NCBI GenBank assembly: GCA_002269645.1
Contig: NIVC01000309.1
Location: 621,281 to 685,280, forward strand
Source: Macrostomum lignano
Lineage: Eukaryota
Length of the DNA: 64,000 nt
Direction: 5' to 3'
Shown here in pieces: positions 44,301 to 49,759 of the stretch (positions are counted from its first letter, which is position 1; every line of letters begins with the position of its first letter). The translations under genes and the position numbers were made by a program. The notes under the pieces were generated by a model. The model saw only the letters and a list, made by a program, of their open reading frames with translations, did no database searches and was not told the origin of the DNA.

Positions 44301-47300
44301 ACTAACTAACTAACTAACTAACTAAATAACTAACTAACTAACTAACTAACTAACTAACTAACTAACTAACTAACTAACTAACTAACTAACTAACTAACTA
44401 ACTAACTAACTAACTAACTAACTAACTAACTAACTAACTAACTAACTAACTAACTAACTAAATAACTAACTAACTAACTAACTAACTAACTAACTAACTA
44501 ACTAACTAACTAACTAAATAACTAACTAACTAACTAACTAACTAACTAACTAACTAACTAACTAACTAACTAACTAACTAACTAACTAACGGACCAACTG
44601 ACTAACTAACTAACTAACTAACTAACTAACTAACTAACTAACTAACTAACTAACTAACTAACTAACTAACTAACTAACTAACTAACTAACTAACTAACTA
44701 ACTAACTAACTAACTAACTAACTAACTAACTAACTAACTAACTAACTAACTAACTAACTAACTAACTAACTAACTGACCAACTGACTAACTGAGCAGCTG
44801 CCCCTACCTGCTGACAGCCGCTGAGCTGCATCAGCTCAAAGACGCTCCTCTCCGCTGGCTTGGATTTCACCGGGTCCGTGCAGTTGAACAGCGGCCCCCG
44901 GGTGCCGGCGGCGGCCGCCGACGCCAGGCCGAAGCTGCCGCGCAGGAATTTGAACACGTCGCTCCGCTGCGTCTCGCGGCAGTTTTTGTACAGCTGACGC
45001 ACCGAGTTCAGCAGCAGGCGAGTGGCGAACCGGTGAGATTCAAACAGGCGCAGGTCGACGCTGACGCGGCCTCGACGACAAGGCAGAAGGTCGGAGCCAC
45101 CGCCATCGCCGCCGCTGCCTCCTTCGTCGAACAGGCAAGCGGGCCAGCGACTCAAGCCGGAGCTGCTCAGCAGGCGGCACTCGATCAGCACCAGCAGGCA
45201 GGTTGGCACCAAGTCGAACTGCCGCATCACCAGCAGCTCCTTGGCTACGGCGAATCGGCGCCATTTCAGCGCCGCAACCGCCACGTTGTTCATGCACCAG
45301 AGGGAGTAGCGGTCGCTCAGCGCCTCCGTCGCTAGGTCGGCCACTCGGTCTTCGCAGGACGGCCCGGCCACAATGGCCTTCAGCAAGGATTCATCGAGCC
45401 GACGCTCCTGGTGGAGACGCGAAATTTAACGGGCGGCAGCGACTGAAGTCGTAAATTCAGCTTGCAACAGTAACAGTAACAGTAATAAGTATTTCGGCGC
45501 CTCAGCCATTGATCAGGCTCTTACGCCACTAGATAAATATAAATTCCAGGTTGGGAATGTACTTATGTACACTGAGATCCTAATTGGAGCTAAGAGGACT
45601 GTACAAAGGGCAAATGACAAATCAAAAACCTCCCCGGGGGACAGTGACAGCGGAACGACATACCAGTCAGGAAGCCCGTGCGAATTTCGGCGCCCATTGA
45701 TGACAAATTTTGGTGTTAGTTTAATTAGGCGCTCATTTTAGCAAAGTTTGGCGCTTGTTTATAAATATATTTGGCGTTAATTTAAACCAAATTTAGGCAC
45801 CCATTTTTAACTACTTTATGCCCTCAAATATGAAAAATCTTGACGCCAATTTATGAATAATTTTGGCGTTTATTTAAACTGATTTTTTGGCGCCCATTTA
45901 CCTGGTATAACAATTTGTGCCCACATTTACGAGTATAACAAATTTAGGCGCCTATTTAAACATAATTTTAATACTTAATTATAACAAAATTTTGCGTGCG
46001 TTTAAAGAGAGTTTTAGCGCTTATTTGTAGCAACATTTGGCACTCATTTATGACTAATTATGGCTTTAGTTTAAACCAAATTTAGGCGCCCATTTCATAG
46101 CAGCAAAAAAACTCGAACTAAGGACCTCGAGCTTCGCACCTGGCCCAGATGAACAATATAGGCTCGGAATTGCTGATCCACCGAGCTCGGGCTGAACACC
46201 AGACCGTCCCACAGGCGCAACGCTGAGATGCTGAGCAGCAGGCGCACCGAGTTGTCCCTGATGGCCGCGTACAGCAGCTGGATGGCCGGGTGGAAGTCGC
46301 CATCGTCGACTAGCAAGTCGCCGTAGGCGAATCTGTTGGCGACGCCGACGGTGTCGCGGCCACGGATGGCGGCGATGCGGCGACGCAGATGCAGACTGCA
46401 GTGCGAGTACATGATCTGGGGAGGGGATGGGGTCAGCTGAGATGATGGTCAATCAAACTAACATGGGATCATCTCAGATGGGATCAATGTAGGATGGGAT
46501 CAGTCTGGGATGGGATCATCTGGGATGGGATCAACTGGGATGGGATCAACTGGGATGGGATCAGTCTGGGATGGGATCATCTGGGATGGGATCATCTGGG
46601 ATGGGATCATCTGGGATGGGATCATCTGGGATGGGATCATCTGGGATGGGATCATCTGGGATGGGATCATCTGGGATGGGATCATCTGGGATGGGATCAT
46701 CTGGGATGGGATCATCTGGGATGGGATCATCTGGGATGGGATCATCTGGGATGGGATCATCTGGGATGGGATCATCTGGGATGGGATCATCTGGGATGGG
46801 ATCATCTGGGATGGGATCATCTGGGATGGGATCATCTGGGATGGGATCATCTGGGATGGGATCATCTGGGATAAATCCCCTAACCTGTTCGGCCTCCTCG
46901 GAGCTCGGCAGGGCACAGGAGGACCACACTGGGTCAATGAGGCTGTGCACCACCTCGAGCTCCGCGCTGTTCTCGCAGGCAGCAAGCAGGGAGTCGAGCC
47001 CGTCGCTCTCAATGGCCAAGTCCACGCAGGTCAGGCCGCTGTCGCTGCGGGCCGACAAGCGAAGTCCGTGCCGGACGAGATGGGCGATGTTCTTGGTGAG
47101 GCGGGCCTGGACAGCGAAGTGCAGGCAGGTGAACCCGGCGCAGATGCCACCGGTGACCCGCGACAGCAGCAGTCGCGACCAGCGCTCGGGACCGAACCTG
47201 AGGAGGGAGAGGGTGAGTAACTTGTGAGGGTAACAGCGGGCCGGGTAGGAGTAGGAGCTAAAGTATATAGAAAAAGAGTGACAGAGAGTAACAGAATGAG

Positions 47301-49759: not shown

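Follow-up and report, generated by a model that had tools for sequence, protein, structure and literature searches.

A gene on the minus strand of a 64,000-nucleotide stretch of Macrostomum lignano DNA (contig NIVC01000309.1, positions 621,281 to 685,280; the whole stretch is referred to here as the window) appears to encode a TRPM-like cation channel subunit in which eight ankyrin repeats stand in the place of the N-terminal SLOG (MHR1/2) domain. With a probability of roughly 0.85, this putative subunit belongs to an ankyrin-bearing, SLOG-less clade whose named members are all flatworm proteins and which includes TRPM_MCLZ, a meclonazepam-activated flatworm channel that conducts current in HEK293 cells (PMC10788528). 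The architecture has already been published for TRPM_MCLZ, and the window gene is a new, divergent member that is present in GenBank as a hypothetical protein. A first-pass annotation of the window had proposed that domain shuffling produced an ankyrin-TRPM chimera at this locus. The ankyrin-for-SLOG architecture is real, but the swap did not take place in this gene; it appears to be old and common to Macrostomum, trematodes, and cestodes. The same annotation had cautioned that ankyrin-bearing TRPM-related channels might already be known in some lophotrochozoans, and this is the case for flatworms (PMC10788528, PMC11731825, PMC12861061).

The gene comprises 10 minus-strand exons, all joined at GT-AG sites, with a coding sequence (CDS) that runs from 49729 to 41323 (3477 nt, 1158 amino acids [aa]) without an internal stop. 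Exons were identified between 49.7 and 41.3 kb as stop-free minus-strand stretches with a GC content at third codon positions (GC3) of 0.7 to 0.85, above that of their AT- and repeat-rich surroundings, and were joined at canonical splice sites. The intron phases match, leaving one continuous frame across all 10 exons. The predicted protein consists of a 45-aa leader, 8 ankyrin repeats, a helical linker of approximately 300 aa, a TRPM-type S1-S6 region with its TRP helix and an FGQ filter, and a C-terminal tail that is again helical. The ankyrin motifs, the MHR3/4-like strings, and the pore string to which the first-pass annotation had drawn attention all lie in this single minus-strand frame. 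The range given there, 44808 to 49759, covers exons 1 to 6, but the pore lies outside it, at approximately 43.0 kb; in addition, the exon encoding a 92-aa part of the linker (46415-46140) had been left out, and the start codon lies at 49729.

GenBank protein PAA85693.1 (Macrostomum lignano Mlig003738g2, "hypothetical protein, partial") equals the 10-exon model residue for residue, with 0 substitutions. Because the Mlig_3_7 annotation rests on transcript assemblies, both RNA-seq-guided and de novo, in which TransDecoder called the open reading frames (ORFs) (PMC5730564), this identity joins the ankyrin and pore exons in one assembled transcript and not in separate ones. Copies g1 and g3 of BOX15_Mlig003738 differ from the model at 7 to 9 residues (99% identity), and all three copies are intact. 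The locus is an intact, transcribed M. lignano gene (Mlig003738, copy g2). GC3 climbs from approximately 0.45 to 0.8-1.0 at the ATG at 49729, which on this measure is the predicted coding start. Upstream of exon 1, the 5' untranslated region (5'UTR) is colinear with the genome and contains an in-frame stop at 49963-49961; annotated transcripts read through this upstream frame, and the "partial" flag on the GenBank CDSs reflects the 5'UTR being read in frame. An upstream in-frame ATG at 49882 was rejected as the start, since GC3 is approximately 0.45 there and the g2 CDS, an ORF read from the 5' end of the transcript, begins downstream of it.

The N-terminal third of the protein is encoded by exons 1 to 4. 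Exon 1 (49595 to 49729) carries the ATG (49729-49727) and the 45-aa N-terminal leader (MHRHQQ...LVLLQQ) and ends at the donor GTGAGA. Exon 2 (48493 to 48909) encodes ankyrin repeats 1 to 4 (aa 46-184; GDTAAHL, GATPLLL, GIQPLLQ, and GSNAFHQ), with Pfam Ank_2, Ank, and Ank_3 matches at aa 82-153. Repeats 5 and 6 (GFNPLFV and GMTLAHV) are encoded by exon 3 (47555 to 47778; aa 185-259), which ends in phase 2, and repeats 7 and 8 (GFTCLHF and GLTCVDL) by exon 4 (46885 to 47197; aa 259-363), where they are followed by a conserved "LIDP" capping segment. In family alignments, this last pair is kept family-wide, and it is matched by Pfam Ank_5 at aa 280-320. The eight motifs start at protein positions 52 (GDTAAHL), 89, 123, 156, 197, 236, 280, and 313 (GLTCVDL), a spacing of 33 to 44 aa that is compatible with ankyrin periodicity, and Pfam Ank families match with E values of 3e-15 for the ankyrin exons and 2e-11 for the full protein.

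Structure prediction points in the same direction. An AlphaFold2 model of residues 1 to 469, for which the N-terminus was aligned with the equivalent segments of 8 paralogues, reaches a pLDDT of 84 to 96 over residues ~50 to 340. It contains exactly 8 helix-turn-helix pairs at the motif positions, namely, residues 55-78, 92-111, 126-144, and 159-185 in exon 2, 200-218 and 239-260 in exon 3, and 283-301 and 316-333 in exon 4. When the model was queried against the PDB with Foldseek, the best matches were DARPins and DARPin fusions, ankyrin-B and ankyrin-1, and Espin-AR, with approximately 300 aligned columns and, for the best, a root mean square deviation of 3.6 to 5 Å. The original count of about eight repeats is thereby borne out.

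No SLOG domain accompanies these repeats. A Pfam scan did not find SLOG (LSDAT_euk, PF18139) in the window protein, and our own SLOG hidden Markov model (HMM), built from 10 TRPMs, had no match in a near-identical GenBank copy (P0001) or in the six-frame ORFs of the 64-kb window (best E = 2.5). The DNA upstream of the gene, between 49.74 and 53.16 kb, has a GC content of 27 to 41% and contains no high-GC3 open frame on the strand of the gene. This agrees with the earlier observation that GC-rich coding sequence is missing between 49.8 and 53.2 kb, and an upstream SLOG exon was not found within the window. NUDIX (NUDT9H) and kinase domains were likewise not found in the window protein.

By sequence, the transmembrane (TM) region is of the TRPM type. 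Exon 7 (43707 to 44091; aa 656-784) encodes the pre-S1 segment (FSTKCLNDFVDRAWLG), S1, S2 with the Ca-site positions (...CQEMPE...), and a Cys-rich S2-S3 insert. It aligns with S1/S2 of TRPM2 in HMMER, with a match to the family TM HMM of 2.6e-21. Exon 8 (42780 to 43366; aa 784-979) encodes S3 (RWNAID), S4, S5, the pore helix, the FGQLEMD selectivity filter, and the pore loop, and exon 9 (42206 to 42460; aa 980-1064) encodes S6, the TRP helix (IWRLSKAKLMIQY), and a PPP motif; both exons align with TRPM2 and TRPM5, with family TM HMM matches of 6.3e-36 and 7.8e-25, respectively. The junction between exons 7 and 8 is confirmed by P0001. Alternative junctions, with a donor after CQEMPE and an acceptor before SNFSN, were ruled out, as the transcript-derived protein reads ...GTCGVGAYRKL. 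Exon 10 (41323 to 41607; aa 1065-1158) encodes a rib-helix-like segment (SEQKFRNFSDRYRSFLRYQ) and a long predicted helix, possibly a coiled coil, and ends with the stop codon TAG. The corresponding helices of the AlphaFold2 model, at model residues 738-762 and 766-802, equal protein aa 1075-1099 and 1103-1139; Pfam TRPM_tetra was not detected in this region.

The best PDB matches of the channel part are TRPM channels. In a single-sequence phmmer search, TRPM2, TRPM5, the choanoflagellate TRPM2 chanzyme, TRPM4, and TRPM8 ranked best at 5e-8 to 1e-5, in alignments that begin at S1 and run past the TRP helix; TRPV2 and TRPV3 matched more weakly (about 3e-5 to 1e-4). With a profile of 9 family members, the top 60 PDB matches listed are all TRPM (1e-43 to 1e-25), and the alignments extend from pre-S1 to the C-terminal helices, reaching residue ~1177 of TRPM4. 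An AlphaFold2 model of linker, channel, and tail (818 residues) is of moderate quality (pLDDT 60, pTM 0.59). Its top 50 Foldseek matches are nevertheless all TRPM, with 800 to 900 aligned columns that include the linker and TM-scores of 0.37 to 0.47. No TRPC, TRPA, or TRPN chain is among the PDB sequence matches or top 50 fold matches listed. A TRPA1-like protein (P0218), the sole non-TRPM TRP compared directly and too dissimilar to align, scored -16 bits against the family HMM (that of group A, described below) and -0.4 bits against the window protein, while TRPM-type proteins scored 96 to 141 bits. By these matches, with TRPC judged from the PDB lists, the TM region is of the TRPM type and not of the TRPC or TRPA type.

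Individual residues follow this pattern. The string that the first-pass annotation had called a TRPM-style pore (aa 912-936) aligns with the TRPM S5, pore helix, and FGQ filter. The selectivity filter reads FGQ, like that of TRPM2/4/5/8; the TRP box retains its Trp and is followed by PPP; and the "IGP" of the S4-S5 region is kept. The alignment also places two glutamates in S2 and an asparagine and an aspartate in S3 at Ca2+-coordinating positions of the TRPM2/4/5/8 site, so that 4 of its 5 positions are kept. The Cys-rich insert (RRCNCKCCVGGDGCCGTCGVG; window positions 43707 to 43830 on the minus strand, aa ~745-784) lies in the cytosolic S2-S3 loop and is missing from both the paralogues and TRPMs. 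The locus copies differ at one of its residues (GGDG versus GGDD), and the insert might bind metal or be palmitoylated.

To place the gene among its relatives, 1.84 billion representative proteins were searched exhaustively with HMMER using the non-ankyrin part as the query. This yielded 123 matches, one of them near-identical to the window protein. All were scanned locally with HMMs for ankyrin, SLOG, and MHR3/4, and a subset also with Pfam. Word-seeded protein searches returned no match for the exon 6 to 9 query and only the window protein itself for the family-profile query. Matches with either domain fall into two exclusive classes, carrying SLOG or ankyrin repeats. The SLOG class combines SLOG with a "TRPM2-like" domain and Ion_trans and represents canonical TRPMs, including choanoflagellate-type TRPM2. 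In the SLOG-less ankyrin class, every named member is from a flatworm (Platyhelminthes); M. lignano is represented by at least 21 clusters at 50% identity, and the class further holds the trematodes Opisthorchis and Dicrocoelium, the cestode Schistocephalus, and two metagenome contigs. With the Dicrocoelium protein as the query, orthologues were retrieved from Schistosoma, Trichobilharzia, Fasciola, Echinococcus, and Taenia, all with Ank and Ion_trans and none with LSDAT.

A neighbor-joining (NJ) tree of the region from pre-S1 to TRP (90 sequences, 297 columns), calculated without an outgroup (no TRPC, TRPN, or named TRPS), resolves the ankyrin class into three groups. Group A (bootstrap 98/100) contains the window gene, the largest M. 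lignano radiation, and one metagenome contig, with the window gene as its deepest and longest branch. Group B (100/100) holds the neodermatan orthologues, and group C (100/100) a second M. lignano clade of proteins with detectable MHR3/4. Several members of group C combine ankyrin repeats with a Pfam-significant TRPM2-like (MHR3/4) domain and Ion_trans, indicating that the ankyrin repeats took over the SLOG part only. As the exchange is found in Macrostomum, trematodes, and cestodes alike, it would be older than the divergence of Macrostomorpha and Neodermata. In the literature searched, neither the M. lignano radiation and its size nor its divergent window member appears to have been described.

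Two peculiarities were noted among the database entries of this class. The metagenome sequences P0021 (MEE4247282.1, on a 5.1-kb contig) and P0086 (on a 9-kb contig) each encode an ankyrin-TRPM-like protein in one uninterrupted ORF. One of the two contigs is binned in a metagenome-assembled genome labeled "Kangiellaceae bacterium," and P0021 groups with M. lignano clade A. These ORFs are most likely eukaryotic (marine invertebrate) DNA or cDNA placed in the wrong bacterial bin. In Opisthorchis viverrini, P0004 (two TM-HMM matches) and P0136 (two PPPL motifs) each contain two complete channel modules, and these predictions are probably two tandem TRPM_MCLZ-type genes fused by annotation.

Between the repeats and the channel lies the linker, encoded by exon 5 (46140 to 46415; aa 364-455), a helical 92-aa first part with a GC3 of 0.80 and canonical AG/GT borders that is present in PAA85693.1, and by exon 6 (44808 to 45407; aa 456-655). 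The latter contributes the main part, in which a low-complexity Gly/Ser insert accompanies the family motif RQFDLVP...LLVLIECRLL, and probably represents the MHR3/4-equivalent region. The strings that had been described as MHR3/4-like are located at aa 500-535 and 643-672. Profile-profile comparison with hhalign connects the group C linker (99.5%, E 2.5e-23) and the TRPM_MCLZ-type linker of group B (98.3%, E 1.9e-14) to canonical MHR3/4, and the linker of the window group to group B (96.3%, E 1.6e-9) and group C (64%, E 6.4e-5); the direct comparison of group A with canonical MHR3/4 is not significant (E 0.16). The homology therefore rests on the chain through groups B and C. It is supplemented by a shared RQFD(L/M)xP motif, over which the window linker and the TRPM_MCLZ orthologue of Schistosoma guineensis share 47% identity across 30 aa in BLASTP. 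The MHR3/4 assignment is thus supported by transitive homology and the motif, but not by direct similarity.

Group B can be equated with TRPM_MCLZ, as the published residues occur at their exact numbers: H946 (S4) and Y1038 (pore) in the haematobium group, Y940 in S. turkestanicum, and Y944 in the japonicum group (compared with PMC10788528). In TRPM_MCLZ (Schistosoma mansoni Smp_333650 and the orthologues from trematodes and cestodes), ankyrin-like modules have been described where the N-terminal MHR1/2 or SLOG domain is missing (PMC11731825). The name "TRPM-like" has been suggested for the group on account of its N-terminal ankyrin repeat domains; it clusters next to TRPM and in some species has two isoforms produced through alternative exons 3a/3b (PMC12861061). 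A single ankyrin-bearing, SLOG-less TRPM-like gene is reported for S. mansoni. Its product, Sm.TRPM_MCLZ, has been obtained as a sequence-verified cDNA and works in HEK293 cells, and ligand-gated cation channel activity on heterologous expression has been demonstrated for it and its orthologues (PMC10788528).

The window protein shares with TRPM_MCLZ the N-terminal ankyrin repeats in place of MHR1/2 (SLOG), a helical linker with RQFD(L/M)(V/L)P, TRPM-type S1-S6, the TRP helix, PPP, and helical C-terminal segments. Both are devoid of NUDIX and kinase domains and both are so far known from flatworms only. BLASTP aligns the window protein with the S. guineensis orthologue over the TM core (3e-12, ~24% identity), and the group A HMM scores TRPM_MCLZ orthologues at 126 to 131 bits. 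However, groups A and B form separate clades with bootstraps of at least 98% each, and their union is not resolved in the NJ tree. The window protein is also shorter (1158 aa versus ~1380 aa), and its filter reads FGQ where TRPM_MCLZ has FYSIFE. In S4, the Schistosoma segment MRTLHITS aligns with LRLLSYLR of the window protein, which places a Ser at the H946 position, a residue that bears on drug sensitivity and does not define the clade.

Canonical TRPMs (TRPM2/4/5/8 and TRPM1/3/6/7) share with the window protein the S1-S6 core, FGQ, the TRP-box Trp, the E/E/N/D site, the pre-S1 motif, and the C-terminal helices. They differ in having SLOG (MHR1/2) where the window protein has its 8 repeats, and MHR3/4 of the latter can be recognized against them via intermediates only. 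Group C proteins (e.g., Mlig030565, Mlig019746, and Mlig022043) come from the same species and have the same ankyrin-for-SLOG architecture, but their MHR3/4 is detectable by Pfam (PF25508, E 1e-6 to 1e-11), whereas the linker of the window protein has diverged much further. Sister to TRPM is the TRPS family (soromelastatin, C. elegans ced-11 type), which has a related channel core and is set apart by its description, being devoid of ankyrin repeats (PMC7306681). TRPA, TRPN, TRPC, and TRPV, like the window protein, carry an N-terminal ankyrin solenoid ahead of a six-TM channel, and the cytosolic "skirt" may work alike in all of them; the channel core of the window protein is not of their type, as judged for TRPC and TRPN from the PDB matches listed.

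Several observations weigh against the reading of the window gene as a TRPM-like channel gene of the clade of TRPM_MCLZ. Pfam matches only Ank families in the window protein and detects no Ion_trans, TRPM2-like (MHR3/4, PF25508), or TRPM_tetra domain. The direct linker comparison with canonical MHR3/4 falls short of significance, as given above, and the linker-channel model is only moderate (pLDDT 60, TM-scores of 0.37 to 0.47). The two TRPM_MCLZ residues H946 and Y1038 are replaced by Ser and Phe, respectively. Furthermore, the split between all ankyrin and all SLOG sequences appears in 49/100 NJ bootstraps of a tree that has no TRPC, TRPN, or TRPS outgroup. In that tree, the ankyrin groups fall outside the clade of all SLOG-bearing sequences, choanoflagellate-type TRPM2 included. 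The window TM core is roughly as distant from canonical TRPMs as from channels of the TRPM_MCLZ type. Together with the designation of the group as only "TRPM-like," next to TRPM (PMC12861061), these observations are what would be expected if the ankyrin lineage were an old sister of TRPM plus TRPS that kept an ancestral ankyrin N-terminus, never gained SLOG, and is effectively a separate TRP family. SLOG would then have been added later, in the TRPM/TRPS stem, to an ancestor with ankyrin repeats, MHR3/4, and channel, and the window gene, in which FGQ and the Ca-site residues are TRPM-like, would be among the deepest surviving branches of the lineage. We consider this unlikely. All named members are from flatworms, so that losses in every other phylum would be needed; MHR3/4 of the TRPM type is still plainly recognizable in groups B and C (Pfam PF25508; hhalign 98 to 99.5%); and the topology comes from long branches in an NJ tree without outgroups, with 49% for the key split.

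The remaining explanations are less probable still. The very long branch, the failure of Pfam to detect Ion_trans, the Gly/Ser run in the linker, and the Cys-rich S2-S3 loop would suit a decaying or non-functional paralogue of a large redundant family, but such decay is very unlikely for an intact 1158-codon ORF with strong coding-type GC3 bias in each exon. The gene is transcribed, its three genomic copies are all intact with 0 to 9 residue differences, and the FGQ filter, TRP Trp, S4-S5 "IGP," and Ca-site residues are all retained. Nor do we give much weight to the suggestion, hardly credible in view of the channel core, that the protein is a TRPA, TRPC, TRPN, or TRPV member with a pore that only superficially resembles TRPM. 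The N-terminal ankyrin repeats and the weak TRPV2 and TRPV3 matches would fit such an origin, as would the PPP motif, which follows the TRP box in TRPC too. However, TRPM channels take all the top places among the PDB sequence and fold matches, the TRPA1-like protein reaches only -16 bits with the family HMM, compared with 96 to 141 bits for TRPM-type proteins, and the exhaustive search returned only SLOG-TRPMs and ankyrin-TRPM-like channels among proteins whose architecture was checked. Equally slim are the chances that the chimera is an artefact of read-through or transcript mis-assembly that fused a separate ankyrin-repeat gene with a truncated channel gene. Among the assembled transcripts of M. 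lignano, nearly 7% are polycistronic precursors resolved later by trans-splicing (PMC5730564), and the GenBank CDS is flagged as partial. Against a merger speak the continuous frame with matching intron phases over 10 exons and the channel part, which has no start of its own before S1. The ankyrin-linker-channel order is also shared by over 20 paralogue clusters of M. lignano and by the orthologues from trematodes and cestodes, and Sm.TRPM_MCLZ, of the same architecture, is known from a sequenced, functional cDNA.

Membership in the ankyrin-bearing TRPM-like clade suggests how the channel might operate. By analogy with other TRPMs and Sm.TRPM_MCLZ, the subunits would assemble as a tetramer, possibly via the C-terminal helix, and would conduct cations, probably non-selectively, through the FGQ-type filter. 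The Ca2+-site residues kept in the S1-S4 cavity make Ca2+ dependence or co-agonism plausible. At the bottom of the cytosolic assembly, the ankyrin solenoid would sit where TRPMs have their nucleotide-binding SLOG layer. With this layer replaced, nucleotide input of the ADP-ribose (ADPR) type at the SLOG site has probably been lost, and protein-interaction or mechanical input is a plausible substitute. In Sm.TRPM_MCLZ, H946 in S4 confers high meclonazepam sensitivity (PMC10788528); the Ser at this position hints at low sensitivity, and we speculate that the window channel responds only weakly to the drug.

The surrounding window has the features of animal DNA with GC3-rich exons, AT- and microsatellite-rich introns, and retroelements. 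Of the nine introns of the TRP gene (41695-49399), all but intron 5 are dominated by a tandem-repeat array, a different one in each. These arrays comprise a 13-mer (x37; 48923-49399), 12-mers (47795-48210 and 48376-48491), a 14-mer (x19; 47284-47548), a 15-mer (x27; 46463-46872), (TAAC)x169 (44115-44791), a 40-mer (43419-43569), a 30-mer (42624-42749), and a 22-mer (x22; 41695-42157). The upstream neighbor on the same strand is a P4-ATPase (phospholipid flippase) gene, with a C-terminal TM exon at 56203-56649 on the minus strand (Pfam PhoLip_ATPase_C, 1e-10); its last coding exon may be a small GC3-biased ORF at 53160-53405, also on the minus strand, in line with what the first-pass annotation had assumed. 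On the other side of the TRP gene, downstream, the plus strand carries several coiled-coil-rich, GC3-biased ORFs between 30816 and 38400 (e.g., 34411-34824 and 37797-38396) without a Pfam match, which probably form one unannotated multi-exon gene. Two retroelements are also found on the plus strand. A GC-rich block at 58278-63553 holds a near-full-length non-LTR (long terminal repeat) retrotransposon with an endonuclease/exonuclease/phosphatase domain, a reverse transcriptase, and then an RNase H ORF, and an LTR-retroelement pol fragment (reverse transcriptase and RNase H) is located at 21939-24413.

TRPM and TRPS have been described as families without ankyrin repeats, with SLOG and Nudix domains in TRPS (Himmel et al. 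2020, PMC7306681), and ankyrin-bearing TRPM-like channels qualify this textbook view. Only two TRPM channels of flatworms are known to be targeted by an anthelmintic drug, and one of them is TRPM_MCLZ, the founding example of the ankyrin-for-SLOG type. Taken alone, the window gene is of incremental value. As a free-living species that is tractable by transgenesis, M. lignano offers a non-parasitic model for what the ankyrin module of these channels senses.

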